Assembly: GCF_036588685.1 (NCBI RefSeq)
Contig: NC_086375.1
Location: 40,238,001 to 40,302,000 of the forward strand
Reading direction: 5' to 3'
Length of the DNA: 64,000 nucleotides
Source of the DNA: Mytilus trossulus
Taxonomy: Eukaryota
Shown here: positions 3,397-63,374 of the stretch, one piece after another
How positions within the stretch are numbered: position 1 is the stretch's first letter
Layout of the letters: each line of letters starts with the position of its first letter
Notes under the pieces: model-generated
What the model was told of the DNA's origin: nothing
The model's database searches: none
Seen by the model: the letters and a program-made list of their open reading frames with translations, nothing else
Translations under genes and position numbers: made by a program

Positions 3397-6300
3397 GTTA
3401 TACTACCATTTACTAGTCAAAACAATCAAACAGACGAGGCTTTGGAGAAATCGATCTGCTCATTTTGTAGAATTGGTACCCTTATTGCAGTTTTAGCTAT
3501 ACTCGTAACTGGACTTGGTCTTGGGGTTTATTTAGCGATTCGCAGAAACAACATTGAAGGTTTGTAGATTTTTATATGAATGCTCGTGTCCGGAATTCAT
3601 ACGCGCACTAGAACGAGTTTCCCTTATTGAAAATTAAGCGAACTTAATAATTGTTTTCATTTATATATAACAAGACGATGCGATGATATCAACTCATGTG
3701 CAATATGTGACAGTATGAAACTGTTGAAATAGCATTTAAGCAAACGGATTTGATTCCATACATACCAGATTTCCTGTTGATTTTTATTCTGTTAATGCAT
3801 CGTTAATATATCAGTTTTAAATTTAGAGTATACATTCGTGTGTGTTACACGGTAAAACAATCAATCATTATATTGAGCATTTGTTATAAATAGTCTTTGT
3901 TAAGTTCACATACATCTGTATGATTTACTAATAACGATTTAACACTTACCAAGGATACAAAAGATATATGATCATGACATGTGATTGCAAATTGAAATTT
4001 TAAAGTACAAAATGAACTTTTATGTGTGTTCAATTTCATTTCTTTTGTTTATACGATACTTAAGCATTTAACATGAAAGAGGGACGAAAATACCAAAGGG
4101 ACAGTCAAACTCATTAATCTAAAACAAACTGACAACGCCATGGCTAAAAATGAAAAAGACAAACAGAAAAAACAATAGTACATATGACACAACATAGAAA
4201 ACTAAAGAATAGACAACACGAACCCCACCAAAAACTAGGGGTGATCTCAGGTGCTCCGGAAGGGTAAGCAAATCCTGCCCGACATGTTGCACCCGTCGTG
4301 TTGTTTATGTGATTATGGAACTTGCAGAACGTTGATAAAAAACCACATGTTATGCATTCATACATTTGGTATTAGAGACGTATTTTGCCAAATTTACCGC
4401 GCTTCTAGGAACATTGGATAGTGAAGAAATTTCACAAAAACCATAGGATCTTTGTTAGACATACAGACAGATAGTAATGCATTTTTTGTTATTATTTGTA
4501 AACCTATTTAACAGTATCAAACAGTTATTTTAATCTAAACATTCCTTTAAAAAGTAATCGATTAAATTACAATTACTTTTCTTATTTTATATAACCGATT
4601 ATAAGTACTTATCAAATACACCTATATTAAAATTTAATCGATCACATTATAATACTTTTCTTTAAATTAATCATGATAACTTTCGATTACTGATGAATAA
4701 ATTGTAATTTGTTATATTAAAGAGAAATTGTATAAACTTTTTATCCTAACGCAAGACCTAATTTTATAGTAAAAAAATATATACCCTTAATTAATTCTTT
4801 TTATTTTAGAACTCAGATGGCAAGGATCAATTAAACACGTGTAAAATATGAAAACACAGACAATTGTCTATCTCTTAGTAAAAGACATTTCATTGTTAGT
4901 TCTAATTGTTTTGTTAATTTACCAAATAATCATAGAACTGAACAGGGAATAAAAAATCAAATAACTACAGTTGTTTTGTTTGTAGGAATATAATTGAAAC
5001 ATCCCTACGTTTTACAGGTGTTAATCACCACTTTTGTTTTACAAAAGATGAGCTTGTGTATTTAATTGTAATTGTTTTAACTGCAATATAAGCAAACAAT
5101 AAGCAGTTTGATTTTATTATTCATATGTATGTTTGTAATTTTTCAATACTTATATTGTTGGAAAGTACATAAATTGTATCAAAGTATTTATTGAAAACAA
5201 AATTTAAACAAATTGTAAAAAAAAAGTAAAAAGTGGTTCTGAATTCCTTTAAAAATTTTAAAGTTGGCTCATTATTTGTTATCTTAGAAATTGGATGATT
5301 ACTGAAATTATTGGATAAGATTTCAAAATTTAATCGATTAGATATGGACACAATTACTGATTACGATTACCTTAGCCTGGTCATGACCAGTCTTTCAGTC
5401 AATTATCAGACTTATCTAATCATGTAGAATCATTATTCATCAAACAATGCTGCAGTTTTACAGACAATTCAGTATGATGTAGAACAAGTAAATAACAACT
5501 ACTATAAAGTCGAAGCATCGACTGTAAATATCATACTTGACTGCAACTGCTAAGTATTCAAATTGAGTGAAAGACTTGAAATGACTTAACAATTTTGTGT
5601 GCAGTCTCATGAGGAGTTCTGATCGGAATGGTCGTTTCAAATTTAAAAAGAAATGGTTCTTCTTATATGTCTTTTCACACTTATCAAGATGACTTATAAA
5701 ACATATGTCTTAGCTTTTATTTAAAACATATACAGAATGTAAATAGAAAAAGGGAGATCCTTACAACACACAGAATATATGAAAAAGAAATGTCGTATCC
5801 ATGACTAGATACAACCATTTTCTTAAATAGAACAACGACACCAAAGCATTTGTTTAGAGTTAAGAGTATATACAGCCTGTACAGTATAGTAAAACACTAT
5901 TTCATGTAAATAGTCTAGATTATGTTTTAATTCACTAAAATATAAATATTAGTACTTTGTGACTTACATGTTAATATATAGATAGTTTTTACAGTGACTC
6001 TTATATTTTATATTCATCTCTTTTAATATTGAATAAGCATAAAGAATGACGCTAGTCCGAAAACATATACAGACATTTTAATGTCTGTGTATGTACATCT
6101 TTATCTCAATAGAAATAGTGTTGTCACCGAACTGTTATAACCAGAACGATACGAGCATAATGAGTAATGTGTTATTTGTAATTGGTTTTATATTGCAGAA
6201 GACAAACCTGATAATTCCATGTCAATGACAAGTACATCAATCATACCAATGCAAACGTCAACAAATATATCAGGTACGTTTGCAACAACAATACTCAGAA

Positions 6301-9300
6301 CGAAAACTTCTACAGATACCATTGCCAATCAGATTTCAAGGCTTACAGCACCGACAAGTAATGTACTACTGTTATTCTTAAAAATGTTGTGGTATTAGCA
6401 TCATCTGAGACGTATTGAAAATTAAAAGTTGATTTGTCTACAGTCTTCACTCAATTTTCAAACTTATCCTTTGCCGTGTATTTACGTGAGCAATATACCT
6501 CTCAAATGAGTCACAACAACAAAGATGTGTGTTTGAATTACACAATATGTGCCTGTACATTTTTTGTACTACTACAAATTTTAAAACTTTGAATGTATTT
6601 TTTTACTTATAAAATGGTCGGACACATCTTTCACCAACAACCTCATATTATTTTTTTTAAGTTGAAAAAAGACTTAACTTGTGGATCGGTTTTATACATA
6701 ACTCCATGTCATGGTCATCGTTATTATACATATCATACTCTTGATTATCTCTGTATAAATTACCCTCCTTTATACAAAAACTGTAATGTGTCCATCACAT
6801 CCCTTCAAAGTTTTTTTTACTACAGCAAATCAATATAAGCTATCAGGCAGGTATTGACAGTCTTAGATTATGCGGACCAGTTTACACGAAAAAGATATAA
6901 AATCAACTTTACAAAAACTGAAATTCACAACAATCTATATTAAATGAATCTTTATGAAATAAACTTCAGACTACTGCAACTGTGTAAAACACAATTGGCT
7001 TTATATTAAACAAAGCGACTTACGCTAACCTCGCATATTGTATATATCGTTAGCTGAACATCGACTTACTGTCTTATACATATGTATAGTCTAGATTAAA
7101 TATAAAACTCCCATTGCAATAGATGATATAAGTAGTTTCTAACTGTTTTATTAATTTAATCTTGTAACTTGAATGTAAATAATGACTCACAGTTTAGTTC
7201 TCCTTGGAATATAATTTTAATCATGCATACACTTCCATTTTAGATATAATATCATCCCAAACACCAAGTTCAACTATGCAACCTTACTGTGAGTACCTCA
7301 TTGCTTAATATATAATAATAAAAACACGCTATACAGAGCAGCAGAAGGTCATGAGAAAAAGTTTTAAGAGCGAAAACCATATAAAGCATGCCGTGTATTG
7401 TTATCGATTTTGTTCAATCTTTTTATTGTTTTTTTCATGTTTGATTTTTGTTGTTTTTGATTTATTTCATTCTGTTGCAAAATTCCCTTGGTAAAGTGTT
7501 GTCGCTTATGAAGAGGCGATGAATCAAACGGTTTTCAACGGTACAGTTTGAGTAAATTATTTGAAAGATTTATGGACGCTTTCAGGATTTGGTATACTGT
7601 TACATAATAACAGATGACCACTAAAATGTTCATGTTCAACTTGTCACCCTTTTCCTAATTGGTACTATTGATTGTAAATTTGATAGCGTTTAAACATTTA
7701 CTGCGATTACGAAAATGTAAGATGTAATCAGTCCGATTATTAACAGCATATTTCGATGATTAAATATAATTCTAAAAAACTTCTCAAAAGATAGTTAGTT
7801 AGTGTACATAAGAATAGAATATTCTGACAGAATGCGAACTATAATTGGTCCTTATCCTTTCTTCAGGTATCACAAACGTTAAGAGTAGTATGGTACATGT
7901 ACCTTAGTTCGCATCCTGAGTGTTATTTGATGTTGATTTTGTTACAAAGTCATGTGTCCATTGATTGGTTTTGTTTTATTTTTTCGTGAATGATAGATGT
8001 CTAAGTTGGTTTATTTGTATCTTGGTATACCAGTTTCAATTTCATTTACGTAATCTTTACATCTAATAAATTCATAACGGAGGATAACTGGATATTTTTG
8101 TATGCTCTGTTTCAATTGCCATGTATTATAGTCTTAAGAATAAATTTCTTTAATCAAATGAGGCGGACAATAATAAAAACAGGGCTTTATCATAAGTCGA
8201 CAAGAAACTGACAATACAATGTCAACAAAAACACAATAGGCGACGAAATAGCAACAAAAAACATAACTAAGCAACACGATACCCACAAAAAACTAGATGT
8301 CGTCATTCCCATTATATTCTCTGAAATTTGGATATTTCGTCTTTATCTAAAGTATTTCTTTTCTTGATTCTGTTCGATCGTTTTAAAAAAATTGAAGACA
8401 AATCCGACAATTCAATTTTTCTATTTCAAGAACTGGTCAAATTCATGATGCATTATAAATTGCTTTCAATGAGGGCAACCTTAAATTCAAATTTCTAAGA
8501 ATAATAGTTTGTCCATATTTAGAATGTTTTTAAATCGTAAATACTATCTTTTCTTCTTTTTCATAAAGGTTCGCCGACTGGTACAACGGTTTTAAAACTC
8601 AATCCTCATCAAATAGCTGATCTTGAAGATAACATACACTGGTATATGCATAGTTGCGAAGCCAACGTTGGTAATCCAGCAGGCAATCTAAGTATTGAAA
8701 TTATGAAGTCTGGAGAGATGGAATTCAGAAAATTGGACATAACAGCTGTAAGCACGGAAGACAAGAAAACATCATGCGAAATTCATAGAAAAATTAATTT
8801 TGGAATCGAATTTACATCTGATATGGAGAATGCAATCATTAGATGCAAATTAATTAATAAATTCTTCCCGGACTCTCCGAAATTTTATTCCAATAATGAA
8901 ACTGTTCTACTAATACCAGGTAAATATCGCTTTTGTCACTTAAGTTTAACTAAAACATTGTGAAGACCATCAAACTAAATCATTTCTTGAAGAACTCCTT
9001 TATGATATTTGAATAAAAAATATTTGCCGATTGATGCTAAAAGTATTAGAACGTTTCAACAACAATCTGAAACATCAGTTGGTAAAGACATCGATAGTTA
9101 AAAATAAAAACTATTGGTAAATGGTCGTCGCAAAAATAAAATAAAAAGCGTATATAATTATCATTACTAGTTTACCGACTTGTATTTCTGTCATACTTCC
9201 CAGAACGACTTTTTCCTTGTTTAGATTTTAAATCGTTTGATTACTGAATTCACTTCTTCTTTTGGTCTGAGTATAAAGGAGGGAAAACAGAAGGGTCTAA

Positions 9301-12300
9301 ATCATTTATTTGTTCATTTTAGACGGTGCGCTTCTAGACCCCTTGGCCAACTTAGGATGGTGAAAAACTTCCGGAAATTTTGAATCTTTATTCAAACATT
9401 TGTTTACATTTACTAATGCTACAGAAGTATAGCTCCTTAAGGTCACAATTCAAATAAGAAGATGTTGTATGAGGGTCACTGAGACAACTTTACATCTAAT
9501 TTACAATGAATAAAAAGTGAAGCACATGTAAAGGGTTTTTGAAAATCGAACAGTTGCTTCACAACAAAAACAAAACAAATGCAACCAAGTCAATTGGCCT
9601 TTAGAATAATTAGATATCTAGCCTTTTCAATAAGGAATGTTTACATATAATAGAATACATTGTAAATATCAGCTTTGAAAAGAATGTGTAAATAGCAGCT
9701 TTGATAACAATTAAACAAATATTCAATAAATATGATACTCCTTTATTATTTTTTTATCTTTGATACAATCACTTCATGTTACCTTTGAATTGTATGTGTC
9801 ATTAGTCGTCATTGACGGCTTTTCAAAATGTGTTTTAAAAACGTAATCGAGCTTGATAAGGTGTGCTGTTTTGAAAAATAGATGATTTAAATATCAGTTA
9901 AAGATCTATTGATTTATTGAAAGAGCTGAACTTCATCCACCTGTATTGTTGTGTGAAAATAAATGCATTGCAAGATGACGGATAATACTTTGTTTATATC
10001 TTAAATCTAAGCACAAGTGTTATTGTGTCAAAATGAAATCAGTCATAAATAATAAAGTTTACGATAAACGTAAAGGAAATGTAAATATCTTCGTTTTTTC
10101 GTGTTTTAAACTCGTCATAGAAACCAGGATTACAATTATGCTCGTCAAGAAAGTATTTCAAATGAAAGAAGAAAATATGTTCTAATCTCCCGGAAAAAGA
10201 TTAAACTTGCAGTAGGCTGTATTAGTCTAGACCCATGACGATCCTAGGTCAATAAATTTGTTCAAAATCAGTGCTTTTACAAAAACTACTTGTATGTTTT
10301 ATCTGACCATCTGGTTCAATCATTAAACAATTTACAGTAACGTATACATTTTCCAATCTTTTCTGACGATGCACTCTCGTCAATAAATGGAATTTCTAAT
10401 AATTATCGTTCAATGTTTTTCTAGAAACTATAAACTTCAAAGAAAAGATAAAAAGACCTATTACCGTTTTTCTATTTAAAGTTATCGTTCTTATAACTGT
10501 AGAAAAAATCATATGAAACTGAGAACTTAAATTAAAACGTTGTTGAATTCCGTCTATTTCAGTAAATTATAAAACAAAAAAACAAACACACAGCAGGACG
10601 ATGCTATCTGTATTACGTTTGCAAATTGGTTAAACTTATTTGAGCATTCGATTGGAATTGGGAAAAGGGATCCTAATTATATAAATACCAATACAATAAA
10701 GATAAAACGAGCGTAGAAATGCAACATTCATTCGGACGATTGATATATATTTCTTTTTCAATTAAAAATTGTGTACCACTTAAATTCACAATATTCTATG
10801 CATGCATATAACATGCGTATCAAAAATAGTTTAAGCATATGTAAAATTGTAAAAAAAAAATACTTTTATTTGAATAGGTTAAACAAAATTCGGCACGTTA
10901 AGTTTCAAGGCTCCGTGTTGAAGGCCGTACTTTAACCTATAATGGTTTACTTTTTAAATTGTTATTTGGATGGAGAGTTGTCTCATTGGCACTCACACCA
11001 CATCTTCATATATCGATATAGTTGTCTGTACTAGTAATTTTTTTGGTTTATGACTATTCATTTCTTTCAGGTGATGCATGCAAGGATAATACTGTCCCCC
11101 AAAGCAACCGTGTACATCCCACAAACTGTCATAGTTATATACGGTGCCAAAATAAGAAACCTTATGGACAGGACTGTCAGGAAAACTTTTGTTTTGGAAT
11201 ACATACAGTAGAAACATGCAAACATTGCGATGAAGTTACATGTCCGACACAAAGTAAGAAATAAATGAAATCGATTTTAAAATTTGGTGATGAATAAAAA
11301 AGTCCATTCTGTTATATTTCGTTGGTTTAGGTAATGTCTAATTTCATTTCATTGTGCACGTATATTTGCACACAGTTTTAATATGATTAAGTGATTAAGT
11401 ACACGAAAAACAATCCAAAAACATTTTGCTTAAAAGACGTAAAAGCTTAACAAAGTTCGATCATAGACATGGAATACAAACGTTCAACTACGTGTTAAAC
11501 ATGCATACTATACTAGTCAACAAAAGAAACGATACACGACTTTGAATAAAATTTATCAAAAAATATTAAATTTAAAACAAAATGAGAAACAATATTTAAA
11601 AAAGCTTTCATTTGCAATGTATGTACATGTAATAATGAAAATCAAAACTTGTCGGAAAGTATCTAAATTCCGTGTAAACGATCATAGGGTGTAAATAAGG
11701 TTTGTGGAAAGTTGAATAAAAAATCGACACAATATTGTCTAAGTACTAAAAAAAATCAAATTTGTTTAAAAATATTCAATATGCTCATCAAGTTATGGTC
11801 ATGTTGTAATACATGGGTTGAAATATTGTTTTTTTCTAATTTCTGGGAAAAAAAGTGTTTTTTGAAATCTCAAAATATGCACCAAAAAATTTTTTTATTT
11901 TCATTTCTAATCAACGCTTTAGATATGAAAACAACACACAGTAAATTTAGAACCTTTTTGATTAGTTTTAAGAGTGTTAACGCTTTTTGAATATCACTTT
12001 ACACATACTGTCTATGGTAAATCAGTTTGATAATGTATACATTTTAACGATTTCTTGTGGGGCCGAACTTTGCTTAACAAATAAAGGAAGAAACTGTATG
12101 ATTTTTTAAAACAAATTGATGGCAAACATTGTCTTTACCTTTAAATGAGAGGTTGGCACCATTAATTAGAATTTCTGTTTATAAAATGTTCGTTTTATGT
12201 AAATTTTGAAAAGAAAAAAAAAAAACGCAAAAAAACGCCACGAAAGCAAAAAAATATTTTTTTCAAACGGATTTATAATTGCATAATGATAAAGTATTAC

Positions 12301-15300
12301 TACCTTCAATATTGGTCCAATGAACGGAAAACTTTATCTTTAATTTAAAAAAAAGTCTTGTATAGTTTCTTTTGTTGACTAGTATATATTAAACTTTAAA
12401 ATTATGCCGCATCAAGCATCACAGAAAATGGACTGAATGTCTAAATAAATATCGTTCAAGTTGACCTCTTTTTGTGTTCATTACTTGAATAAGAAGATTT
12501 GACAACCAACTTTCCACAGAGAACAAATGACAAAGAGTTTAACAACTATATGTCACCGTAAGCTCCATATTTGAATAAGACGATGTTATATGATTGTTAA
12601 AAAGATTACTACCTGATATGCATAGAAGGAATCAGGTAGACGAAGGCTAAAAAAGGTCTCAAAGGGTTTCATAATTACCACAGACAGAAAATGCCCTTTT
12701 TATAGCAAGCGAACTACCCGACTTATGCAAACACAAATAACATAAAACAAATAGGGCATACATCAATAATTGCCAACCATTTACTCTCAGACTCCGGACT
12801 TGAAACCCATGTTTTATTTTATTCTTCAACCTTTTAATAATATAACAGTTCAACAGATCAATTTGAAAATACTTGACAAATTAAATCAGCACTAACCATT
12901 AAAAATACATACACAAACAAAGAAGACACAAAGTACCAATCTAAGATGTCATACATTTACGGAAGTTACTATCCCTATTTATATTTTGAAATGAAGAGTA
13001 TAGAATTATCAACGACCTTTACACCGAAACATATCCAATTACTGAAATATATCATAGCAATGATAACAATTTTTTTTCTACAATCAAAGCAAAAATATTC
13101 ATGCATCACATTTGAACATTTTGTTTTCTATTAAAGGTATCTCTTGTGCAAATGCGACTGTCGTTCAGAAGGTAGTATGCAAATTAAATCAGAAAAAATT
13201 ACCATATGTCAAAAGAGCTTACTTTTTTTTACATGTATCGGTAGAACATAGTGTATAGCTCCTATCAAATTAAAGCAAGTGATATAAGAACATATTTAGT
13301 AAACACAATGTCTTTATAAATATCCTCCCGCAAAACCTGAAATTACCCAGGGTTCGCGAAGCTCTGTACCGTTTTGATGTTGTGTTCTGTGTACTGTTTT
13401 TATTTTCTTTGTTTGTCATGACGTTTCAGTTCAATGTTGACTGTTGAATTTGAATTTGAATGTCATTTTGGTATTATACGACTCTCATTTAAAAATATCT
13501 AGATCCGTTACAAACAAAACTACAGTTGTAAATTTTATATGTGTTCTTGTTTCCTATATTTGAATGTGTCTTTTAGTTTCTTCAAGAAACACTGAACTAG
13601 CCATTGTAGTTAAAATAAATACAGAACACGGCTGTTGATATGTTACAGTAGAGAAAAGTTGAATACTAGGAAATGTTTATAAATGCAATAGATTGTATTG
13701 ATGTTTTTGTCTCTTAAATCAATTAGGAATAGAAAAAAATCAAGGTTACAAATAAAATATTAGGTAATCGATCGCACACACTCATAAAATGGCAACACCG
13801 TTCGCATCGCCCGTGTATGCTTTTCTTGTTATACATGTACATGTAGCACAAATCGTACGAATTCATATTTAGTGAAAATATTACAATCGGTAAAATTACA
13901 GACTAAAAGACTTTATCAAAACTAATTGTAACAATACTACAAGAATCCTTTACATCTTAGTTTATCAGAGCATCATTTGAACTTATGTTGTTGAAGGTAT
14001 TTTGATACACAATTGCAAACTTTACTTGTTTTGGTAAAATTTGCATTGCAAGGATATTAATAATTCAATTGACAATACCTAGATGTACTTCAAAACAAAT
14101 TAAAATCAGTTAAAGGTGTTTTTCTTATTTACCTTGGGATACTTTACAATTTGGAATTATTCAGCTTTTAACAATGTATGACCTATTTGGGAGTAAAGGT
14201 AATTATTTTGTTAAAACCTTTAAGTACATACATTTCGCTACATGACAGATCGAAAGAGCGTTTGAAATTAGTTCTGGTGGGAAATAAAATAGAGAAGAGA
14301 CAAATTGCTCCTTATCTTTTGCTTTTTTTTAATCACAATCTGTAAATTAATGCCAGTACTTATACCAAAGGTAGGTTGTAGTGCAATGTCAAAAGAATGT
14401 GTTGAATATTTTTTAAAAGTCCTGGCAAATCAATTTTATTAATTACTTTTACAGCAGAACCAAGTTAATATGACATTACACTCTGATCAGGTTGTCGGTC
14501 TTACTACCCCAAGAACTTCACACCTTCACATTTGCACTGGTGTCATTGGCAACCTAACGGGAGACATTAAGGTTGAAATACATTTGGCAGGAAACGCTAA
14601 CTATCAATCAATAAGTCCTATGTATTCAACTAAAACAGATACAACAGTCAACTGTGAAATTATGAGAGTCCTTAAGTTTTGGCTTGGATTCACTGCAGCT
14701 ATGTACAATGCAACTATCAGATGTCAAGTAACAAATGGCCTTTTTCCTGCTGCTTCGCCTAAATACTCTAGCAGTGAAACTCTTCAACTTGTTTCAAGTA
14801 AGTGGGAACTCGTATAGAATAAGTAGTATTTTTGTATGAAATGAAAATAAATTAAGCAAGGAAGACCATTTTGATGAAACCGTGAACACCTTTCAAAAAA
14901 ATATGGATGGATAATAGGAATAAATAGGCTTAATCAATGCAACTTAATTCCTTAATGGTTTTGATAATTAGGACTCCTTAATGTCATTTATTAATTGATT
15001 TTTATATTTACAGTTTTATAAAGGTCATATTCACCCGACTTCCCGCTTATGTAAACTTAATATCAAATTTCACACATACAACTTTGAAGCATTATCAACA
15101 TTCAGAGATGTTATAAAATAAATTGACAGAATAAGAAAAATATTTATGCATGACTATCAACTCCATGGCATTTAGTGTATTGCATATATTCGTTTATCTA
15201 CAACGACAACTAAAAATAATGCAAACACTTATAGTATGATAAACAAAGGACACCACTTTTTGTTTTTTAAATTCCCTTATTTTGTACTATCAGAAGTGTA

Positions 15301-16007
15301 CAAAATCATGTAATTTTTTAAACTTGAATATGATAACAGAAGACAAAACTTTAACAAAATTGATTTAAAATAAAAAGACACAAAAGTAAAACAAATATCA
15401 GTGTTTCAACAGCATGTGAAGATAATGTATTATTAAATTCCAATGAACGACAATTCTGGGTGTTTGTGGACAGAGGATTTTGGAAATGAATGGCATGGCC
15501 TTATATATTGTCATACGTTAAATCACAAAAATAACGAACTCAGAGGAAATTTTAAACCTAAATTCCCTAATCAAACGGCAAAATCAAAAGCTCAAACACA
15601 TTAACTTTTTGTGTCGTAGTTTGTGATTTGCTCATTTTGATTTTCCTCTTTCACTTTTGACATAATGCTGGTAGTCCTAGAATTACAGCATTTTATTGTA
15701 ATTGCTGATGTTTCATTGCTATTAAATGTGTATCGAGTATTTTCTCTGATATTACTTTCTATCTGCATTATAATTGAAACTAGACTCATGATGACCTTGT
15801 GATAACAAAACTATCTTTTCAGGTGACTTTTGTGAACAGAATTTCAATGGAACCATAACCAACAAATATCATCATCCAACAACTTGTCATAGATATGTTA
15901 CTTGTGAAGATAGAGGTCCCTCTGTTCAAGCATGTCCAGGCAATATTTGCTTTAGTTTAGAAAGAGATTATTGTGATTATTGCTCTAATGTGAAAACATG
16001 TCCGTAA
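3397..16007 (+). CDS. Paralogue 1: type II membrane Ig + chitin-binding protein (first/cytoplasmic exon not found)
   Basis: Exons, all AG/GT and phase-consistent: 3397-3559 TM (CSFCR-IGTLIAVLAILVTGLGLGVYLAI-RR); 6199-6357 S/T stalk; 7244-7288 45-nt exon; 8569-8919 Ig1; 11071-11253 CBD1; 13137-13171 35-nt exon (SISCANATVVQK); 14458-14797 Ig2; 15823-16007 CBD2 + TAA. The joined frame is open for 487 codons. Confidence 0.85.
4076..4314 (-). mobile_element. 3' tail fragment of the Penelope-like element at 395-1637
   Basis: Reverse complement of ~1400-1637 (aaagagggacgaaa...gacaacgccatggc...ctcaggtgctccggaagggtaagc). Confidence 0.8.
10909..11015 (+). repeat. Interspersed repeat (ggatggagagttgtctcattggcactcacaccacatctt family)
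   Basis: Absent from the matching intron of paralogues 2 and 4. The same motif occurs at ~17505-17570, ~37420-37487 and ~53290-53450, and reversed at ~27820-28020, ~45700-45880 and ~56185-56415. Confidence 0.7.
11511..12384. mobile_element. Non-autonomous TIR DNA transposon (MITE-like, TA target duplication; Tc1/mariner-type)
   Basis: TIRs tactagtcaacaaaagaaac... / ...gtttcttttgttgactagta, imperfectly extending to ~30 bp, flanked by TA on both sides. Empty site atgcatattatattaaac in paralogues 2 (~33040) and 4 (~63760). Confidence 0.85.
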
Positions 16008-18985: not shown

Positions 18986-19029
18986 ACGCCAGACGCGCGT
19001 TTCGTCTGTATAAGACTCATCAGTGACGC
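18986..19029 (-). ncRNA. Type I hammerhead ribozyme (array copy 1)
   Basis: Minus strand GCGUCA-CUGAUGA-GUCU(UAUAC)AGAC-GAAAC-GCGC-GUC/UGGCGU: full core, stem II, palindromic stem III and stem I. Confidence 0.88.
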
Positions 19030-19333
19030 TCATATCAAAATAGTAATAAACCAAACAAATACAAAGTTGAAGAGCATTGAGGATCCAAAATTCCAAAAAT
19101 TTGTGCCAAATACGGCTAAGGTAATCTATGCCTGGGATAAGAATAGTTTTTCGAAAATTTCAAAGTTTTGTATACAGGAAATTTATAAAAATGACCACAT
19201 AATTGATATTTATGTCAACACCGAAGTGCTGACTACTGGGCTGGTGATACCCTCGGGGACGAAACGTCCACCAGCAGAGGCATCGACCCAGTGGTGTAAA
19301 TTGTTATCAAAGGTACCAGGATTATAATTTAGT

Positions 19334-19377
19334 ACGCCAGACGCGCGTTTCGTCTACATAAGACTCATCAGTGACGC
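19334..19377 (-). ncRNA. Type I hammerhead ribozyme (array copy 2)
   Basis: GCGUCA CUGAUGA GUCU UAUGU AGAC GAAAC GCGC GUC/UGGCGU. Confidence 0.88.
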
Positions 19378-19687: not shown

Positions 19688-19731
19688 ACGCCAGACGCGC
19701 GTTTCGTCTACATAAGACTCATCAGTGACTC
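19688..19731 (-). ncRNA. Type I hammerhead ribozyme (array copy 3, one stem I mismatch)
   Basis: Same core; the stem I 5' strand is GAGUCA instead of GCGUCA. Confidence 0.8.
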
Positions 19732-51114: not shown

Positions 51115-53694
51115 TGAAACTATATAATTTTTTTTCGTTTTATACAAGGTCTATAACATTTGCAAAAAAACGTATATGTTATAATATATTATACGAAATT
51201 TCGTTATTAAAGATATTCAAAACAAGATTGAACAAAACTCTTAGTCTTTAATGCTTCTTATAAATATTCAACGTTAATAAATTCGGATTATTGTACATTG
51301 TGTGTGTTAGCGCTCCTGTTTATCTAAACAAAAATATATAAACTTGATTTATGATTATTTTTTTAAATTATGAACAACATATATGATATAAAGCAAAGAC
51401 TGTATTTATATCTTTAAACTGCTATAAACCTATATATTTCGTTCATAGCTCAATTTGCTAAAACTATGCCTATAATAATAACAAACAATTGCAAATAATA
51501 AGACACTTTTGCAACAAAATTAGAGTTGATACTGAAAATTTCTAATGTTTATTTTTATGTCTTCTCGCTAATTTCTTTTAATTTAAATTCAATGGATATT
51601 CAACAAGTTTATGTATAATCCTTGTTCATGTGAACAATAAAATAAAATAACATAGCCAGTTTAAAAAGTGACTGGTTCATGAAAATAACTTGAAAATACC
51701 ATGTGAATATTGTAATTACCACTATGTATTGATATATGGTCATCTTTGAAATCGCGGGTCCGTATGTAAACTCAATTATATACTAGAACGTATGTTTTTT
51801 CGTGATGTTTAAATACGCTGACTCTTGAAATGCATAGAGACGTTTTATCAGACACCTCTTGTCGGTAAGTACCCTGCTATCTAAAAAAATCCTTGCATCA
51901 AATCTCTGGAGAAACTGTAAACAGACAGTTGTTTGGGTAAATATCTATTCTTATCAAAGATATCAACTAATCTAAGTCGACAGAACCTTCCTTATAGCAT
52001 TATCGAACCCAATATTACTGGACCAGATACTCATCTCTACATTAACTTTAATGTCTTTGCAGTGGTGCGCAAGGCTATTATTTTAAAAGTTTTAAAACTA
52101 ATTATCAACATGTCAAATAAAACCATACAAATCAGCATTGAAATTATGCATTCGTACCAGACCTGTGTTTCTTCTTTAAAAGACTCACCAGTGACGTTTA
52201 AATCAAATTAGGTTGAAAAGGCGACATAAATTTCCGTAACTTCTTGAAATATTCTACTGTATTTTTTAAAAACTAAAACACAGGCTTATCGTTAGAAATG
52301 GTCAGTGTATGTAAAGTGTCTAATGTAGAATGATAAATAAACAGACGAACTTTTTTTTAATTTTTGAAGAAAATGAAGAAAATTAGTTACAATGTATATG
52401 TTCAGAAATACATAATACCAATAAAACAAAGTAAGAGATGCGAACGGGGTTTTATCGCGCCTAAAGCCATCCAGCTGTGTCATATATACCAAAATAGGTG
52501 AATATTTAGGACATTTCACGAACAGATCGTGCAGGTACTTTATAACTAGCAAGTAAGATGTTGTTGCAGTAAAAAATATTCATTTTAATACAATTATTAA
52601 AGTTGTATAACGTAGAATATGTTTTGTCATTCAGTTTCTTCATATTTAACTAAATTCCACTATGATGATTTCGTAATGCTAGTCATGTTTACTGTCGAAT
52701 AATGATACTATTCTTTTATTTTCACTGTGGAGCGAATCATTAGTAATGTATATGCGGTGCATTTTCACTGTATAATTTATTTATTTTTTATCTATTACAG
52801 CTCATTTCTTTAAGCATGTAGAGCAAGACTTTAGTTGACTTGCTTGCTTTTTTTTTATTGGATAATCATTATGATAACACCCAATTTAATTCAAATATTA
52901 AAAATGCAGGTTAAACTATGTCTATTCATATTGTTTAAAAATGTCAATCTTATTTACAAAGTTTGTATAAATAATTATACAAACAAAGCAAGCAAGCCAA
53001 CAAAAGTTTTGCTTTACATTCATTAGGAAATTAGCTGTCATGCCTTAATTTAGCCGACTTGCTCAAATAATAGATAAAGTAAAAGAAAGATTTGATAAAA
53101 TGTAACTTACGGAGGAAAGTTTGGTTTTAAAACACTCTAATAAATTCAATAGAAATAACATTTATTTCAAATGTATTCCATTTAGTTTCTTATAAAGCGT
53201 ATAGGGATCTTTATCCTTATTTTTTTTATCCATTTCCATGACACTTCACCACTAATTACGTACAGTTTGATATAGATTGCACCTTTTTTTCCCGTTTAAA
53301 AGGTTTTACACTGGAGCCCTTTATAACTTGCTGTTCGGTGTGAGCCAAGACTCCATGTTGAAGACCGTATTTTGACGTATAATAATCTACTTTTATAAAT
53401 TGTGACTCGGATGGAGAGTTGTCTCATTGTCACTTACGACATCTATATATGGCTAAAAAACGAAACGAGACGGGATAAAAAGGGATAAAAAAATTCACGC
53501 TACTTTTTTAATATATTTATAATGGGCTTAATATGAGTCAGAATAGAGTAAAATAGTGGGTCGCATTTGGGTATAAGCGTCACGCCGGATTGCCAATTTT
53601 TTGCAAGCGTGACTGGTGAAAGTCAAATGACTGTGTAGTGAAAAACGGGAAATGAAGTCTAGCGGGACACGGATAATTACAAAAAAATAGAACT

Positions 53695-53800
53695 GCATAG
53701 TATAAGCGGGATACGGGAATCTGACAAAACAATAAGCGGAATACGGGAATCTGCAAAAACAGTAAGCGGGATCCGGGATCAGAACCCCCAAATGAGACCC
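53695..53800. repeat. Short ~30-bp tandem subrepeats within a probable interspersed element
   Basis: taagcgggatacgggaatctg(a)caaaac repeated ~3 times, just upstream of where homology to paralogue 2 begins. Confidence 0.5.
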
Positions 53801-54284
53801 CAGAATAAGATATTTTTGTATATTCATCCTATTATTACAGTCATGCCTTCAATAACAAATGTATCCGATGCATGCATTTTTTGATATTTTTGGTCCCTTT
53901 TTCAATTTTGTGGGGTCCAAATTTATTGACAAAAGTCCTTTAATATAGATATTTGGAATTCGTTGACATGCTGAATCTATCCGTGTATCAACCATATGCA
54001 TAACTTTTATTCGAACTTTCCTTGTTTCCTTCATTTCAGATCCCACTCAGTGGCTCCCGATTCCCGCCTACTCAAACCCAATTTTTTGTATCTAAGTATA
54101 TCCCTATTAAATAATCAAATACGTAATATCTTCAAGAAGGACACTTGTCCTGAAACCTAAACTAGAAATATATTTAATGGAGATTCGTCAGTGTAATTGA
54201 AACCAATATTTTTGAAATGTTGTTCTAATATAACAACTGAAAGTAACGAAAATTAATGGGTCGTTTGAAATCTATATATTTCAG

Positions 54285-57200
54285 AGAAAAACACTTCTTC
54301 GTCCTTGCTGTCAATATCAAACAAAACCATGAATGCGTCAACGACTGATCAATCGGTTACTTTTGGAACAACAATACTCAGTACGGATGCGTCAACATAT
54401 ACCACTACAAATTTGGCTTCTGTGATAACAACACCAACACATGACCAGGATACACCATCAGGTACAACTAAAAGTCATGACATATAAATATGTATCGATT
54501 TATCTTCTCATCTCTTTGTTATGATGATTGAAACTTTGTTTCATGACTTTCTTTTGATTTTTTGTGTATTTAAAAGTTTGAATATCCAGTTCACATGTCA
54601 AACCACTTAAAGGTTGCACTTCTGTAAATATAGACAATGTAATTTCCAATAGAAACTCCCTTTACGGCTAAAACTGTTCAATTTTATCAATGAAATTTAG
54701 TAACTTTCTAGAGCATAATCTTATACTAAAATTCTGTAATACCCATCCCTTCACTTTGGGTCTTATTCAGAATTCAATTGTCGCCGCTAACATGGGTATT
54801 CGGTAACATTCCCAAGGTATATCTCTATGAGATGAAACATAGAGATCATATCGGGGAAGCCGTACGTAATCAAAACAATATATCTATGAATACCATATAT
54901 CTCCCTAACAGCTGTATATATTTTTTCACTCACGGGAATTGCCTGTCAACCAGTTTGCGTATGACGAGATATATCATGTATCAAACAAAACGAATTAAGT
55001 GTTATATTAAAAAATGCTACGACATTTGCGTTAAGTTGGTCAATGTGGCTTGATTTGTAAAACAAAAGTGTAACATTTCCATTCGCTATTTATGAGATCA
55101 ATGACGAGAATAAAAGGTCATTATGGGCTTTGTTCCCTCCGTAGCAAATGAGACATGGTATATCTTCAAAGACTCGTTGATCATCATATTGTAATTAAAT
55201 CATTTGAGGTGGTATCATCTCGTTGTATAACCTATAAATGAATTTCTTATATAAAGGCTGTTTTTCAATATATAAACAGTGATTAAAAGGACAAACATCA
55301 AAAAAGATATTATAAAAAAGTTCCTTCCTCTTGTTTTTTTAATCATTGCTGTGTGGCCAATGATAGTTCAAATTGTAAAATACATTAAATCATTCTAATT
55401 AAAATTAGAATGGGTATGGGGAATGTGTCAAAGAGACAACAATCCTATCAAAGAGCAGAAAACAGCCAAATGCCGCCAATACGTCTTCAACAAGCGAGAA
55501 AATCCCACAACTGGTGTTGGAAATGCTTTTCATGGAATTAACCGGTGTTTGTCTAAACAAAAACAGAGAAAAAAAATACTCTTCTGGTGTTTGGGAACTC
55601 AAACCTGAATTTGAACCCATACAAATTGCAATGAAGAAACATACACTGCATAAAACTATATAAACACACTATTAGGTTAGATGAACCATCTTTATATTAG
55701 ATATATGCCATTTCAATATAAGACATGCTAAGTTTCATATGGGCTAAATTACTGAAATATCAGTTAAAGCTTTCTATGTCGTTTTGAAGTACTTATACGA
55801 ATCTGTCACTCAATCCTTCAATCTTGTAAGTTTATTACAAGTAAGTATTAAGTACAAGTTTGATCATTTTAATGGCATGTTTAGGTTTCAATGGAGTGAA
55901 AGTGAGCTTTTAATCCTCCGAGGAGTAATTTAGTCATGCAAAGATCTTATTTATTTCTTTACAGATAGCAGTTCATCTAAAGCACCAAGTACCACTATAC
56001 AACCGCACTGTAAGTACATGACTGTATAAAAAGACGGCATACAAAATAGTTTACAGAATATAAGAAGATCGTTGCGATTCGACATACATGTAGCTGCATG
56101 AAAATTATGTGTATTATGTCATCTCATACTTTCTGATTCCACCTTCACTTTGGATTACTTTTATATAGGATTTGTATGTCGTATATAGATATAAGAAGAT
56201 GTGGTATGAGTACCAATGAAACAACTCTCTATCCAAGTCACAGTTTGTAAAAGAAATCCATTATAGGTCAAAGTACGGTCTTTAACACCAAGTATTGACT
56301 TACACCGAACAGCAAGCCTTAAAGGGCCCCAAAAATGATTATTGTAAAACCATTCAAACAGGGAAACCAACGGTCTTATCTATATAATAAACGAGAAACG
56401 AGAAACGAGAAACACTAATCTCTGTTAAAGATTCCCTTTTAGGTGGTGTCGCTTATAAAGAAGCAAAAGTTCAGAAATATAACAGTCGCATATTTGAAAG
56501 TTTTGTTTTGCAATATGTTGTGTTTTGACTGTCCCTCTTTGGCATCACTTTTAGGAATTTTTGGTCCTAAATGCTCTTCAACTTCGTACTTTATTTGGCC
56601 TTTTAAACATTTTTTTATATTCGAGCGTCACTAAGGAGTCTTTTGTAGACGAAATGCGCGTCTGACGTAAATATAAAATGTTGGTCCTGGTATTCTCTTA
56701 TGAGTTTTTCTGGTATCTTTCGTCCCTCTTTCATAGTTCGTTTCTGTGTGTGTTACATTGTCGATTGCCGTTTGTTTTTTTGTGTTTCTGTTGTTTCTTT
56801 GTTTCCCTCGGTTTTAATTTGTAACCCGGATTTGTTTTCTTTCAATCGATTTATGACTTTCAAACAGCGGTATACTATTATTGTCTTTATTATAATAACA
56901 AATAAATATGTGAACTTCTTCAAATCTTAAAACTTGAAATGTATTTTTGATTTAAATTTGTTTGTTTTCCGTTCTGTATTCATTTGCTAAAAATATTTTA
57001 CAAAATCAATTAATACAGTTACTAAATGAGATTATTGAAGGACTCAGATTGTCCCTCTACCATGATAATAAGTGTTATAAAATTAGTTGTTTAATTAGTT
57101 ATCAAAAGTACCAGGATTATAATTTTTAAAAGATTCACATTGATGTCTCTACTTATAAAGTTGGATCACTGTAATCAATCATGGTGGTAACAAGAAACAA

Positions 57201-60200
57201 AAATTTTCAAAAGCTGAAATATCGTTACGAAATAAACTTCAGACTTTTACGACTGTGAAAAACACGATTGGATTTATTCTTTACAAAAATTCATTACGCT
57301 AACCTCACTTAAATTTATCGATATTATATTGTTAGCTGAACATCGACTTGCCATCTTATTTATATATATATTGTCTTTATTAAGTAAATTATAATATAAC
57401 ACCCATTTCAATGCACGAATTAGGAAGTTTCGAAACGTTTTATGTATTCAATTTTGGAAATTTAATATAAATAATGACACACAATTTACATGTAGTTCTC
57501 AATAGAATATGATCTTTTTTCATGCAACCATCTCATCACTTCCATTTTAGACATAATGTCATCACAAGCACTAAGTTCAACCATGCAATCTTACTGTAAG
57601 TACACCATTGTATACAAAATGTATCATATTGAAGAAAAAAAACAGTATACAGAGCATCAGAAGGTCTTGGAAAATAGTTTGAGGAAAATAAACAATATAT
57701 AGCATGTCGTATTTTGTCCTCGATTTTGTTCCCCCTTTTTATTATTTAAAGTTATTATTTTATTGTTTTTGGTTTTTAGTCACTTTTGTTGCAAATTCCT
57801 TTGATCAAGTGTTAAAAATGAGGATGGATATGGGGAATGTGTCAAAGAGACAACAACCCGACCAAATAAAAAACAACAGCAGAAGGTCACCAACAGGTCT
57901 TCAATGTAGCGAGAAATTCCCGCACCAAGAGGCGTCCTTCAGCTGGCCCCTAAACATATATATTCTAGTTCAGTGATAATGAACGCCATACTAATTTCCA
58001 AATTGTACACAAGAAACTAAAATTAAAATAATACAAGACTAACAAAGGCCAGAGGCTCCTAACTTGGGACGGGCGCAAAAATGCGGCGGGGTTAAACATG
58101 TTTGTGAGATCTGAACCCTCCCCCTATACATCTAACCAATGTCGAAAAGTAAACGCATAACAATACGCACATTAAAATTCAGTTCAAGAGAAGTCCGAGT
58201 CTGATGTCAGAAGATGTAACCAAAGAAAATAAACAAAATTACAATAATACATACATAACAACAGACTACTAGCAGTTAACTGACATGCCAGCTCCAGACT
58301 TCAATTAAACTGACTGAAAGATTATGATTTCATCATATGAACATCAGGCACAATCCTTCCCGTTTGGGGTTTAGTATCATACCATCATAACGTATTTGAG
58401 AAGAACATAACCCGTGTCATGCCAACAACTGTTTTTAGAATAAATGTGTTTAGTTCCGATGCAAAGACCTTATCAGTGACTCAATATAAACGCCAAAATA
58501 TGCAATCTTTAATGACTTGACAACAGTATCGTAAATATATCCCTTCTTAATAAGTCTATTCAAAGGTTTTGTAAGTTTCTGAGGTGAATACTGACACCTT
58601 TGTGCTTTATAAAGAATATTTCATAAAAAATGATGTGAAATACCTGAACGTATTAGAAGTCTGCATGTTGAGCTATATTTACGAATGATGTCTTTATATC
58701 GATGATAAAATTTAGTAAATGTTTTGACTAGTTTGTGATATCGAAAACCCTGGTGTAATAATTTTTCAGTAATACATAAATTTCTCTCGTTAAAATCTAA
58801 AACATTATTACATACACGAGCGAATCGTACAAGTTGAGATATATAAACACCGTAAGATGGTGACAAGGGAACGTCACCATCTAAAAACGGATAATTAACA
58901 ATAGGAAATGAAAAATCATCCCTTTTATCATAAATTTTAGTATTCAGCTTTCCGTTAGTGATATAGAAATCAAGATCGAGGAAAGGGCAGTGGTCATTGT
59001 TAGTATTAGCTTTATTTAAAGTAAGTTCAACAGGATAATTTCATTAATATACATACTGAAGTCGTCATTATTGAGAGCCAAAATGTCATCCAAATATCAA
59101 AAAGTATTTTTAAATTTGTTTATCAGATGTTGTTTCGATGGGTCTTTGCTTAATTTTGTCATAAATTGTAACTCATAACAATACAAAAACAGGTCTGCAA
59201 TAAGTGGTGCACAGTAAGTCCCCATTGGAATTCAGATAATCTGATGATATACGGAATCCCCAAAGCGAACAAAAATGGTATCTAGTAAAAATTCAAGGGC
59301 ATATATAGTATCAAAGCATGTCCAATTAACATAGTTTTTTTGTTTATTGCTACTAAAAAATGACCTAAAAGAGTTTGAACATATACATTCACATTCTGAT
59401 TTTTTGAATGCCAATTTAATTATGTGTGTGAATTTTTTCTTAATGAGAATGTGAGGCAATGTGGTATACAGGGTAGAAAAATCAAAACTTTGAACTGATT
59501 GAAAATCACCAATATAAGCATGCAATTTATCAAGTACTTCCAACGAGTTCTTGAAACTCCAAAAGTAATTTATTCCACTATTTGCGAAGGCCTTATTTGA
59601 ACAATTTGTCGCTTTTGAGAAAGTGATGAAGCTAAAGGTTTTCAGTGGAACAGTTTGAGTAAATTCTTTGTAAGATATATAGATGCTATCAGGATTCAGT
59701 AAAATGTTACAAAATATCTTTGTGACATATATGCACTAAAATGTTACAATTGTGTTCGCTTTCAGCCTGTCGCTCTTTTTCTATATATAAGTAAATTTCT
59801 ATAATCATAAGAGGCAAGAAACTGACAACACAATGCCAACAAAAATACAAAAGACGACGAACTATCAAATAAAACACCGTGCAACACGGCCGCGAAAAAA
59901 ACCAAGATGTCGTCATCCCCATTATACTATCTGAAATGTGGATATTTGTCTTTATCTGAAGTATTTTGTTTCAGATTCTGTCCTGATCGGGTCAACAAAG
60001 TGTAAATCCGACAATTTCATTTTCTATTTTTAAATCTTTTCAATTCAAAGATGCATTAAGAAATAATTTCAATGACGGCAAAATTGCATTCTTGTTTCTT
60101 AGTATAATAGTTTGTCCATTTTTGTTTGTTTTTTTAAAATCGTAAAAACTATCTTTGTTTCTTTTTTATCAAGGTCCGCCAACTGGTTCAGCGGTTTTAA

Positions 60201-63200
60201 AACTAAATCCTCATCAAATAGCTGACCTTGCAGATAACATATACTGGTATATGCATAGTTGCGAAGCCAACGTTGGTTATCCAGCAGACAATCTAAGTAT
60301 TGAAATTAGGAAGTCTGGTGAGATGGAATTCAGAAAATTGGACATAACAGCTGTAATCACAGAAGACAAGAAAACATCATGCGAAATTCATAGAAAAATT
60401 AACTTTGGAATCGAATTCACATCTGATATGGAGAATGCAATCATTAGATGTAAATTAATTCATAAGTTCTTCCCGGACTCTCCGAACTTTTATTCCAATA
60501 ATGAAACAGTTCTACTTATACCAGGTAAATACCGCTTTTGAAACTTAAGTTTAACTAAAACATTGAGAAGACCATCAAACTAAATCCTTTTCTATAAGAA
60601 CTTCATCAGGATATTTCTTCTTTTAGTCTGAGTATCTAGGGAGGAAACAGAAATGTCTAAATTATTTACTTGTTCATTTTAGACGATGAGCTTCTTTCTC
60701 CCTTGATCAAATTGGGAAAGTGAAAAACTTCCTGATAAATTGAATTTTTATTCGAACATTTCGCATTTCATTTACTAATTCTACAGAAGGTGAGGGCATG
60801 TAGAGGGTTTCTAAAAATCGAACAGTTCCATAAAAAAAAAAGGCGACCAAGTCAATTGACCTTTAGAATCATTACTTATTTAGCCTTTTCAATTTTCAAT
60901 AAGGAATGTTTACATATAAAAGAAAACCCTGTAAATAGCAGCTTTGATAACAATCAAACAAATCTTCAAAAGAATATGATACTCCTTTATTATTTTTTTA
61001 TCTTTGATACAATCACTTCATGTTACCTTTGAACTGTATGTGTCATTAGTCGGTATTAAAGGCTTTTCAAAATGTGTTTTAAAAACGAAATCGAGCTTGA
61101 TAAGGTGTGCTGATTTGAAAAATAGATGATTTAAATATCAGTTAAAGATCTATTGACTTATTGAAAGAGCTGAACTTCATCCACCTGTATTGTTGTGTGA
61201 AAATAAATGCATTGCAATATGACGGATAATACTTTATTTATATCTAAAAAATCTAAGCACAAGTGTTAACTGTGTCAAAATGAAATCAGTCATAAATAAT
61301 AAAGTTTACGATAAACGTAATGGAAATATAAACATCTTCGTTTTTACGTGTTTTAAACTCGTCATAGAAACCAGGATTACAATTATGCTCGTCAAGAAGG
61401 TATTTCAAATGAAAGAAAAAAATATGTTCTCATCTCCCGGAAAAAGTTTAAACTTGCAGTATGCTGTATTAGTCTAGACCCATGACGATCCTAGGTCAAT
61501 GCATGTGTTCAATATCAGTGATTACACAAAAACTACTTCATGTATGTTTTATCTGAACATCTGTTTCAATCATTAAACAATAAACAGTAACGTATATGTT
61601 CAGGACCATATGTGGACCAAAAGCGTATGGACATGACCATATGCGTATACTCATCTGGTCCGACCGTACGCGTATGGTCGGATCATATGAGTATAATACT
61701 CGTTTGGTTATTAATGGGCTAGACCATATGTGTATTTGGACCATGTAAGTATTTGTTTTTAAATTACATTAAAAAAGTTTCAATAATATAAAAACTGTAT
61801 TTAAAAAAAATGATGGTTACATGACAATGTTTTATTTTTATAATTCAAATATTACGTAAAAAACAAATATTGATGCCATAGTTGGTTTTCATGACTAATT
61901 ACATTCTTGCATGTAGGCTTGGGTTGACATTTTCTTGCACATGGTATCATAGCTATTTTGCATTTGCAAGTCGGTTGTGCACGATCCTTTTCATTTACAC
62001 CTTATGTCTGTGAGTGAAAAGCTAGCCTTTTTGTAGCTGCGTACAGTGATACCGAGGTCAATATTCAGATATGAATATGGTGTTTTTATGAAGCTCTAGA
62101 TCTCAAATATCATATTTACGTGACAACTAAATAAACTGTTACTTTCCAGTGACTTCTTGTGTAACAGTATATTAAAAAAAAAATGGAATTTTTTTAAGCC
62201 GACTTATCGCCATGCACTCGTAATAACAAATCGGTAATGACCATCGGTATAAAATTTGTTTATTATAATTTTGACAAGTAAGTAAAATTAACTATTTGAA
62301 ACTTCTAATTTTTATTTAGCTAATCTTTTTCTTATAATATAATAATAAAATGACCTATATGATAGCGTCTTTTTAATGAACGATCATACCATATGAAGAG
62401 TTTAGAAGTATTAAAAGTAAACCGTTATAGAGTGTTTATCACCCCGACCATACACGTACGGTCGGACCATACGCGTATGGTCGGACCATATGAGTATATA
62501 CCCATATGGGTATCACCATACGCGTATGGTCCAAATACTCATATGGTCCGGAACATATACATTATCCAATCTTTTCTGACGGTGCACTCTTGTAAATAAA
62601 TGGAATTTCTAATAATTATCGTTCAATGTTTATCTAGAAACTATAAACTTCAAAGAAAAGATAAAGAGACCTATTACCGTTTTTCTATTTAAAGTTATCG
62701 TTCTTATAACTGTAGATAGACTCATATGAAACTGATAACTTAAATTAAAACGTTGTTGAACTCTGTCTATTTCAATAAGTTATAAAACAAAAACAAAAAA
62801 CACACAACAGGACAATGCTATCTGTATTCCGTTTAAAAATTGGTTAAACTTATTTGAGCATTCGATTGTAATGGGGAAAAGGGATCCTAAATACCAATAC
62901 AATAACGATATAACGAGCGTAGAAATGCAACATTCATTCGGACGACTGATATATATTTCTGTTTCAATTAAAAATGTTGTGTACCACTTAAATTCGCAAT
63001 ATGCTATGCATGCATATAACATACGTATTGATAATTGTTTATGCATTTGTAAAATTGTAATACAAATGACTTTTATTTGAATAGGTTAAACATAATTCGC
63101 CACGTTAAGTTTAAGCTAGCTAGTTAAAAACTTGCTAAACATAGTTGCCTGTATTAAATTATTTTGGTTTATGACGATTCAATTTTTTCAGGTGATGCAT

Positions 63201-63374
63201 GCAAGGATAATACTGTCCCCCATAGCAACCGTGTACATCCCACAAATTGTCAACGTTATATACAGTGCCAAAATAAGAAACCCTATGGACAGGCCTGTCA
63301 GGAAAACTTTTGTTTTGGAATACATACAGTAGAAACATGCAAACATTGCGATGAAGTTACATGTCCGACACAAA
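54285..63374 (+). CDS. Paralogue 4: ectodomain exons only (no tail/TM exons found; continues beyond the window)
   Basis: Exons with intact splice sites and open frame: 54285-54461 stalk; 55965-56009; 57551-57595; 60174-60524 Ig1; 63192-63374 CBD1 (protein identical to paralogue 2). It may be a pseudogene or an alternative cassette. Confidence 0.7.
57814..59606 (-). mobile_element. Penelope-like retroelement (second family), 5'-truncated, frameshifted RT plus long 3' tail
   Basis: Minus-strand RT pieces SFDFSTLYT (ORF 59232-59543), GIPMG..CAPLIADLFL, RYLDD (~59085-59099) and YGVYISQLVRFAR (ORF 58621-58866). Empty site aagtgttgtccctttt in paralogue 2 (~29365). Tail fragments at ~27040-27140 and ~55410-55510. 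Confidence 0.85.
61597..62555. mobile_element. Non-autonomous TIR element with repetitive, palindrome-rich subterminal arms
   Basis: Ends tgttcaggaccatatg... / ...catatggtccggaaca, flanked by TATA on both sides. Empty site gtaacgtatacatt in paralogues 1 (~10340) and 2 (~31835). Confidence 0.85.

Follow-up and report, generated by a model that had tools for sequence, protein, structure and literature searches.

What do the repeated, spliced gene copies that fill a stretch of the Mytilus trossulus genome encode, and what would their products do at the surface of a mussel cell? The stretch, a 64,000-nucleotide window on contig NC_086375.1 (G000:C3:40238001-40302000), is AT-rich (~31% GC) and contains no N. 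An original prediction, made from the letters alone, had proposed that positions 3397-63374 hold a tandem family of type II membrane receptors with a tyrosine-bearing tail and two modules that each pair an immunoglobulin (Ig)-like domain with a chitin-binding domain (CBD), and had read them as possible immune sensors of chitin. Our analysis confirmed the tandem family of spliced genes and supported part of the interpretation. The products are membrane glycoproteins of ~620 amino acids that span the membrane once, in type II orientation (N-terminus inside), and for which a lectin-type receptor mechanism, with chitin binding at the surface coupled to the cytoplasmic tail, appears the most likely on the evidence of the sequence, an assignment that we make with moderate confidence.

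In a comparison of the stop-to-stop segments of the window with one another, one set of exon-sized open frames came up in four copies, all on the + strand. The proposed span was apt, in that 3397 is the first base of the transmembrane (TM) exon of copy 1 and 63374 the last base of the first CBD exon of copy 4. The copy with the best evidence is paralogue 3, whose nine exons join into one open reading frame (ORF) of 621 amino acids, the length that had been predicted for it. The predicted order of tail, TM helix, stalk, Ig, CBD, Ig and CBD was borne out by this ORF, its splice joints and its domain matches (database searches were run exon by exon, and joined translations were used for frame checks only):

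42812-43204, + strand: exon 1, cytoplasmic tail (131 amino acids; Tyr 23, 27, 43, 60, 110 and 131); RNA contigs 42738-43199 from three runs; donor GTAAGT at 43205, phase 0
43613-43775, + strand: exon 2, juxtamembrane CxxC and then a 24-residue TM helix; acceptor ..cttatag, phase 0; donor joined to the stalk exon in RNA
44395-44571, + strand: exon 3, Ser/Thr-rich stalk; RNA joints at both ends
45475-45519, + strand: exon 4, micro-exon with a terminal Cys just ahead of Ig1; RNA joints in three runs
47013-47363, + strand: exon 5, Ig-like domain 1 (C2-like); RNA joints 45519/47013 and 47363/47777
47777-47959, + strand: exon 6, predicted CBM14 domain 1; RNA joint at the acceptor, contigs leaving at 47959; Pfam CBM_14 E 0.007
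48752-48786, + strand: exon 7, 35-nucleotide micro-exon with a conserved S-C just ahead of Ig2; placed by this motif and in-phase AG/GT, with the peptide present in RefSeq homologues; outside RNA coverage
49251-49590, + strand: exon 8, Ig-like domain 2; placed by its splice sites and by RefSeq homologues
50936-51114, + strand: exon 9, predicted CBM14 domain 2 and stop; Pfam CBM_14 E 1.5e-5, 25.5 bits (gathering 22.1); acceptor confirmed

A 607-residue model that used an Ig2 acceptor at 49258 was dropped in favor of the acceptor at 49251, which together with the micro-exon at 48752-48786 gives the 621 residues.

RNA contigs were examined for copy 3 over positions 42450-48350. A 1205-nucleotide contig from run X1 follows the genome through 43665-43775, 44395-44571, 45475-45519, 47013-47363 and 47777-47959 and then runs on, and shorter contigs from two other runs (from other studies and with other organism labels) contain the same joints. 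The four joints (43775/44395, 44571/45475, 45519/47013 and 47363/47777) are all GT..AG and in frame, and because the introns have been removed the contigs must derive from RNA. The tail exon is represented by separate contigs, at a low depth similar to that of the other exons. We accepted its join to the TM exon because the phase-0 donor GTAAGT is followed by the acceptor ..cttatag, because the TM exon contains no ATG upstream of the helix, and because RefSeq models make the same join. It is identical (..IKY/VEGPLNS..) in XP_076095545.1 from M. galloprovincialis (623 amino acids) and homologous in XP_076098972.1, in models from M. edulis and M. californianus, and in XP_063427236.1, a M. trossulus model from the same contig. 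In all, the models with this join span four Mytilus species, including P0100 from M. trossulus, and the four longest (616-627 amino acids) extend to the second CBD.

The topology that had been proposed, with no N-terminal signal peptide, also stood. Two in-frame stops lie at 42785-42790, inside the transcribed leader and just 5′ of the ATG at 42812, and therefore no in-frame signal peptide is possible. Residues 1-156 of copy 3 are hydrophilic and contain a single glycosylation sequon, which gives a cytoplasmic part of ~155 residues, and the only hydrophobic helix comprises residues 157-180. Everything that marks an extracellular, disulfide-rich and glycosylated part lies C-terminal to this helix: 24 Cys, 10-11 sequons, and a stalk of 81 amino acids that is 44% Ser plus Thr and carries several N-glycosylation sequons. 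The type II orientation predicted from this domain content, together with a weak positive-inside bias, is in our judgment well founded.

The two Ig-like domains are 33-40% identical to each other and have three Cys in common. Two of these, C29 and C92, are 63 residues apart and invariant in all seven domains of the window (and nearly so in the 48 domains of the family that we aligned). A Cys pair spaced ~55-70 residues apart is the B-/F-strand pair of Ig domains, and by that precedent C29 and C92 would form the canonical pair; the other invariant Cys, C69, has a probable partner in the Cys that the micro-exon supplies ahead of each Ig domain. An AlphaFold2 model built from the 48-sequence alignment, which supersedes an earlier one built from seven sequences (pLDDT, the predicted local distance difference test, 66.6, with weak Foldseek E-values), scored a pLDDT of 90.6 and a pTM (predicted template-modeling score) of 0.82. 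It has the seven-stranded beta-sandwich of the Ig fold, and Foldseek returned mostly Ig folds for it, with C1/C2-type second domains as top matches; there was no V-set match. Searched against PDB sequences, the Ig profile found only Ig-superfamily proteins, at weak E-values of 0.4-1.3, and the Pfam Ig models matched none of the 48 family domains, those of the window included, at E ≤ 0.01. The only Pfam Ig match came from a homologous domain in a scallop relative (P0062, residues 914-1005), which matched C2-set_2 at 3.9e-8. We conclude that the Ig-like exons encode a divergent C2-type Ig domain; the CBM_14 match and the C2-like fold that the original prediction had expected were both found.

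The CBD exons are predicted to encode CBM14 (peritrophin-A) domains. All seven in the window match Pfam PF01607 (CBM_14) at E ≤ 0.01 (best 3.9e-6), as does the homologue P0004 with 29.6 bits. The canonical six Cys (C3, C19, C25, C35, C49 and C57) are invariant, and an additional pair, C40/C52, brings the number to eight; the C19-C25 interval contains aromatic residues, with an invariant F41 further on, in keeping with the peritrophin-A pattern. Among the PDB matches of the CBD profile are the squid chitin-binding beak protein 3 and the CBM14 domains of chitinases.

Inside the cell, the tails are only ~35-40% identical between subfamilies, and five Tyr do not vary among the eight paralogues and orthologues compared; they stand in SY, GYL(Q/H)P, DY(L/I)x(V/I), Yxx(I) and YV. 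The eight tails also share an invariant juxtamembrane CSxC. The motifs of the tail are GYLQP, DYLxV, YSVI/YxEI and KYVEG, of which the YxxP and YxxI/V motifs could suit SH2 docking or AP-2 sorting. A search of the ESM Atlas with the tail gave just one match, at 0.84, in an unnamed mollusc cluster.

Put together, these parts suggest how a receptor of this design might work. The stalk would hold the CBM14 pair off the membrane, where the pair would bind extracellular chitin from fungi, parasites, food or the mussel's own chitin matrices, and the YxxP and YxxI/V motifs of the tail would couple binding to phosphotyrosine signaling or internalization. Several results weigh against this proposal. 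The charges flanking the helix are +4/-1 N-terminally and +3/-1 C-terminally, a net of +3 versus +2, and this positive-inside bias is weak. Pfam found no match for the tail exon, and thus no known signaling domain; we also considered and rejected readings of its motifs as an immunoreceptor tyrosine-based activation motif (ITAM), its inhibitory counterpart (ITIM) or a hemITAM, because spacing and flanks are wrong and no acidic-YxxL is present. The first CBD exons score 16.9-22.0 bits, slightly below the gathering threshold of 22.1, and a 25-kDa polyphenol-binding protein ranks first among the PDB matches of the CBD profile (E 1.2e-6). At the RNA level, no listed contig crosses the tail-to-TM junction of copy 3 (43204/43613), the joints seen in RNA being those from the TM exon through stalk, micro-exon and Ig1 to CBD1, and run X24 has almost no reads on the exons, which indicates low expression.

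The most serious competitor, although we think it improbable by comparison, is that the proteins are structural or adhesive anchors, membrane-bound peritrophins or mucins that tether mantle, gill or gut epithelium to the animal's own chitin (the shell framework, the periostracum or gut mucus) and do no sensing of non-self. The dN/dS ratio between diverged copies (nonsynonymous over synonymous substitution) is 0.2-0.3 in Ig exons and CBD exons alike, and therefore the proteins are under purifying selection; that this selection is not of the diversifying kind fits an anchor. CBM14 domains with a mucin stalk are moreover the plan of peritrophins and intestinal mucins, and the larger relatives described below contain the matrix-type domains SEA and TSP1. 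Proteins with CBM14 domains are also common in bivalve shell matrices (PMC8382897, PMC4660305). However, a long tail with five invariant Tyr exceeds what an anchor needs, a group of ~20 clustered and recombining paralogues looks more like a recognition family, and the shell proteome literature that we searched mentions no protein combining Ig and ChtBD2 domains and no member of this family.

A ligand other than chitin is, in our view, rather unlikely; on this reading the CBM14-like domains would bind, for example, polyphenols, a protein or glycans of another kind, and the family would serve cell-cell or cell-matrix recognition unrelated to chitin. The polyphenol-binding top match, the extra Cys pair (eight Cys instead of six) and the subthreshold scores of CBD1 would all fit such a shift of ligand, but the domains retain the peritrophin-A pattern in both its six canonical Cys and its aromatic positions, and the same profile also matches the squid chitin-binding protein and the chitinase domains. 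Finally, that the models are mis-joined or are decaying pseudogenes, with tail/TM and Ig/CBD exons in separate transcripts, is very improbable: the unseen tail-to-TM joint, a copy 4 without tail and TM exons and the partial M. trossulus RefSeq models (281-385 amino acids) speak for it, but an RNA contig links the TM exon to Ig and CBD exons, the TM exon offers no ATG before the helix, the ORFs are intact with the dN/dS given above, and RefSeq models from four Mytilus species agree on the tail-to-TM join.

If the genes encode chitin receptors, how do these relate to receptors already described? VCBPs, the chordate proteins that likewise combine Ig-superfamily and peritrophin-type chitin-binding domains, are secreted and have the order V-V-CBD. 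They bind gut chitin and microbes (PMC4757023, PMC4008424). The mussel proteins instead are type II membrane proteins in which C2-like Ig domains alternate with two CBM14 domains behind a mucin stalk and a Tyr-rich tail. They are not VCBPs, because they contain no pair of N-terminal V domains, have a TM helix at 157-180 in place of secretion by a signal peptide, and differ in domain order. The nearest functional analogue may be FIBCD1, a vertebrate type II transmembrane endocytic chitin receptor (PMC9994688, PMC6888979), which resembles what is predicted for them in its type II topology, C-terminal chitin-binding ectodomain and short signaling or endocytic tail; unlike them, FIBCD1 binds through a fibrinogen-related domain, forms coiled-coil tetramers, contains neither Ig nor CBM14 domains and is unrelated in sequence. 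A Dectin-like layout had also been claimed, and the order of N-terminal cytoplasmic Tyr motif, TM helix, stalk and C-terminal glycan-binding domain (a predicted one in the mussel) is indeed that of Dectin-1 and other CLEC proteins. The likeness ends there, in that Dectin-1 has a C-type lectin domain and a hemITAM (an acidic stretch and then YxxL), whereas the mussel proteins have neither, Lectin_C matching none of the exons, and their tail contains no ITAM. Thus the family resembles both FIBCD1 and Dectin-1 in layout and belongs to neither by descent. Peritrophins and chitin-binding beak proteins (PDB 7bwe) share the CBM14 fold family and its Cys pattern, and many peritrophins have a mucin-like region, but these proteins are secreted and lack Ig domains, a TM helix and a cytoplasmic tail.

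The closest relatives are other bivalve proteins. Among 1.84 billion protein representatives, the Ig-like profile found 80 clusters, and every source that we traced was a bivalve (Mytilus species, Pecten, Ylistrum, Argopecten, Mizuhopecten, Potamilus, Sinanodonta, Mercenaria and Tegillarca). Larger relatives repeat V-set, homologous Ig and CBM14 domains, and several of them follow the same type II plan, with a TM helix, SEA and an N-terminus that is long and hydrophilic. For example, proteins with a SEA-(V-set)-C2-CBM14 arrangement from Ylistrum balloti (XP_060075028.1), M. coruscus (CAC5391878.1) and Sinanodonta woodiana (KAL3847356.1), all uncharacterized, have a homologue of the Ig-like domain (HMMER E 1e-5 to 1e-35) immediately before CBM14 and an N-proximal TM helix after the long hydrophilic N-terminus; they differ in their size (1100-2100 amino acids), in their additional SEA, TSP1 and V-set domains, and in tails unrelated to that of the mussel family. 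The compact ~620-residue form was found in only five Mytilus species, under the names 'uncharacterized' or 'chitin-binding type-2 domain-containing', with the M. trossulus RefSeq models partial. In the P0091 cluster (M. californianus LOC127738486), RefSeq gives one family member eight isoforms of 628-663 amino acids, a hint that exons of this family may be used alternatively or to the exclusion of one another. The genes of the window are thus a compact, Mytilus-restricted form, and the pair of Ig-like and CBM14 domains is a bivalve-wide module, of which the larger type II relatives (with SEA, V-set, C2 and CBM14) come nearer to a membrane-bound VCBP-like layout.

These comparisons divide the claim that the family is a separate, convergent design: it is distinct from VCBPs in domains, order and anchorage, but its module is shared across bivalves and its larger relatives approach VCBPs in layout. 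The original prediction had not recognized it as a described family, and the literature we searched by architecture, accessions and UniProt name contains no description of it. A bolder version of the receptor proposal, which we put forward only tentatively, is that the locus holds ~20 lineage-specific, tandem, membrane-bound immune receptors for chitin, a type II phosphotyrosine counterpart of chordate VCBPs with cryptic C2-Ig domains, derived from the older bivalve SEA-V-C2-CBM14 class. If a type II Ig-CBM14 receptor with a mucin stalk and a conserved Tyr tail links chitin recognition to the cell interior, this would be a route new for an invertebrate. The analysis also uncovers a divergent Ig domain family that current domain libraries miss.

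The exons of the remaining copies are as follows:

3397-16007, + strand: paralogue 1, TM exon to stop; boundaries mapped from copy 3, all AG/GT; joined frame open for 486 amino acids; TM 3397-3559, stalk 6199-6357, micro-exon 7244-7288, Ig1 8569-8919, CBD1 11071-11253, micro-exon 13137-13171, Ig2 14458-14797, CBD2 15823-16007
L003:~7907-8206 (within L003:7901-8224 = G000:C3:40235901-40236224): probable tail exon of paralogue 1, outside the window and ~2.1 kb upstream; hidden Markov model of the tail, E 5.5e-4; donor GTGAGT, phase 0
24082-36388, + strand: paralogue 2, complete, 623 amino acids, a single ORF with its sole stop at the end; tail 24082-24474, TM 24869-25031, stalk 25912-26088, micro-exon 27594-27638, Ig1 29953-30303, CBD1 32473-32655, micro-exon 33658-33692, Ig2 34835-35174, CBD2 36204-36388
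54285-63374, + strand: paralogue 4, exons within the window; stalk 54285-54461, micro-exon 55965-56009, Ig1 60174-60524, CBD1 63192-63374; frame open for 251 amino acids
L002:2413-2760 and L002:3773-3967: Ig2 and CBD2 of paralogue 4, beyond the window

Tails of the predicted kind lie within the window in copies 2 and 3. The probable tail exon of copy 1 is divergent and shorter (~98 amino acids, with GYAEL, SYLTV and QYDKI), and therefore tails vary among subfamilies more than ectodomains do. For copy 4, the 3.2 kb that follow the stop of paralogue 3 (51115-54285) contain no tail, TM, signal or other hydrophobic exon; its stalk, Ig1 and CBD1 exons are open and under purifying selection (dN/dS 0.19 versus copy 2), and it is either a 5′-truncated duplicate or spliced to the phase-compatible TM exon of copy 3, ~10.5 kb upstream. 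The exons from the stalk through the first micro-exon and Ig1 to CBD1 have phase 1-1 and one domain per exon, which is the classic pattern of shuffled extracellular modules; those that follow (second micro-exon, Ig2 and CBD2) lack this symmetry.

Alignment of the copies at the DNA level supported the proposed tandem duplication. Between copies, identity is 72-97% over blocks of 0.4-4.4 kb and 85-97% over the 2-4-kb blocks by which the copies are defined. The 5′ part of paralogue 2 (20921-25245) is 94.7% identical to paralogue 3 and its 3′ part 90-94% identical to paralogue 1, and paralogue 2 is therefore chimeric, while paralogue 4 (53988-63910) matches paralogue 2 at 95-96% from the stalk exon onward. 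Across the 1.3-Gb genome the Ig-like exon has 45 matches, all of them within G000:C3:40053700-40868806 (0.8 Mb), with the members furthest to the left on the - strand. The family thus grew in one 0.8-Mb Mytilus cluster through tandem duplication and exchange of exon blocks, and this single cluster of ~45 Ig-like exons is a tractable candidate for how bivalves sense fungal, parasite, dietary or their own chitin. The cluster also contains three near-identical repeats of ~52 kb, at ~40.72, 40.77 and 40.82 Mb.

Several other repeats lie between and within the genes. The spacer between copies 1 and 2 contains four tandem units of ~354 nucleotides (18796-20151), each with a - strand match to the type I hammerhead ribozyme (18986-19029, 19334-19377, 19688-19731 and 20042-20085). 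At 33-33.8 bits (E 3-6e-6) these fall slightly below the gathering score of 34, and Rfam at gathering threshold gave no match across the window; the array looks like a retrozyme, and a related piece (69% identity) lies at 49716-50120 in an intron of copy 3. Two mutually related ORF fragments resembling reverse transcriptase (354-1252, + strand, and 58621-59543, - strand; weak RVT_1, E 0.043) are retroelement remains, located upstream of copy 1 and within an intron of copy 4. The introns of copy 3 also contain short elements at 43975-44120, 45600-45800 and 46200-46590 over which the summed contig depth reaches thousands in all four runs, with many loose ends. They are transcribed repeats of high copy number, likely similar to short interspersed elements (SINEs) or miniature inverted-repeat transposable elements (MITEs).

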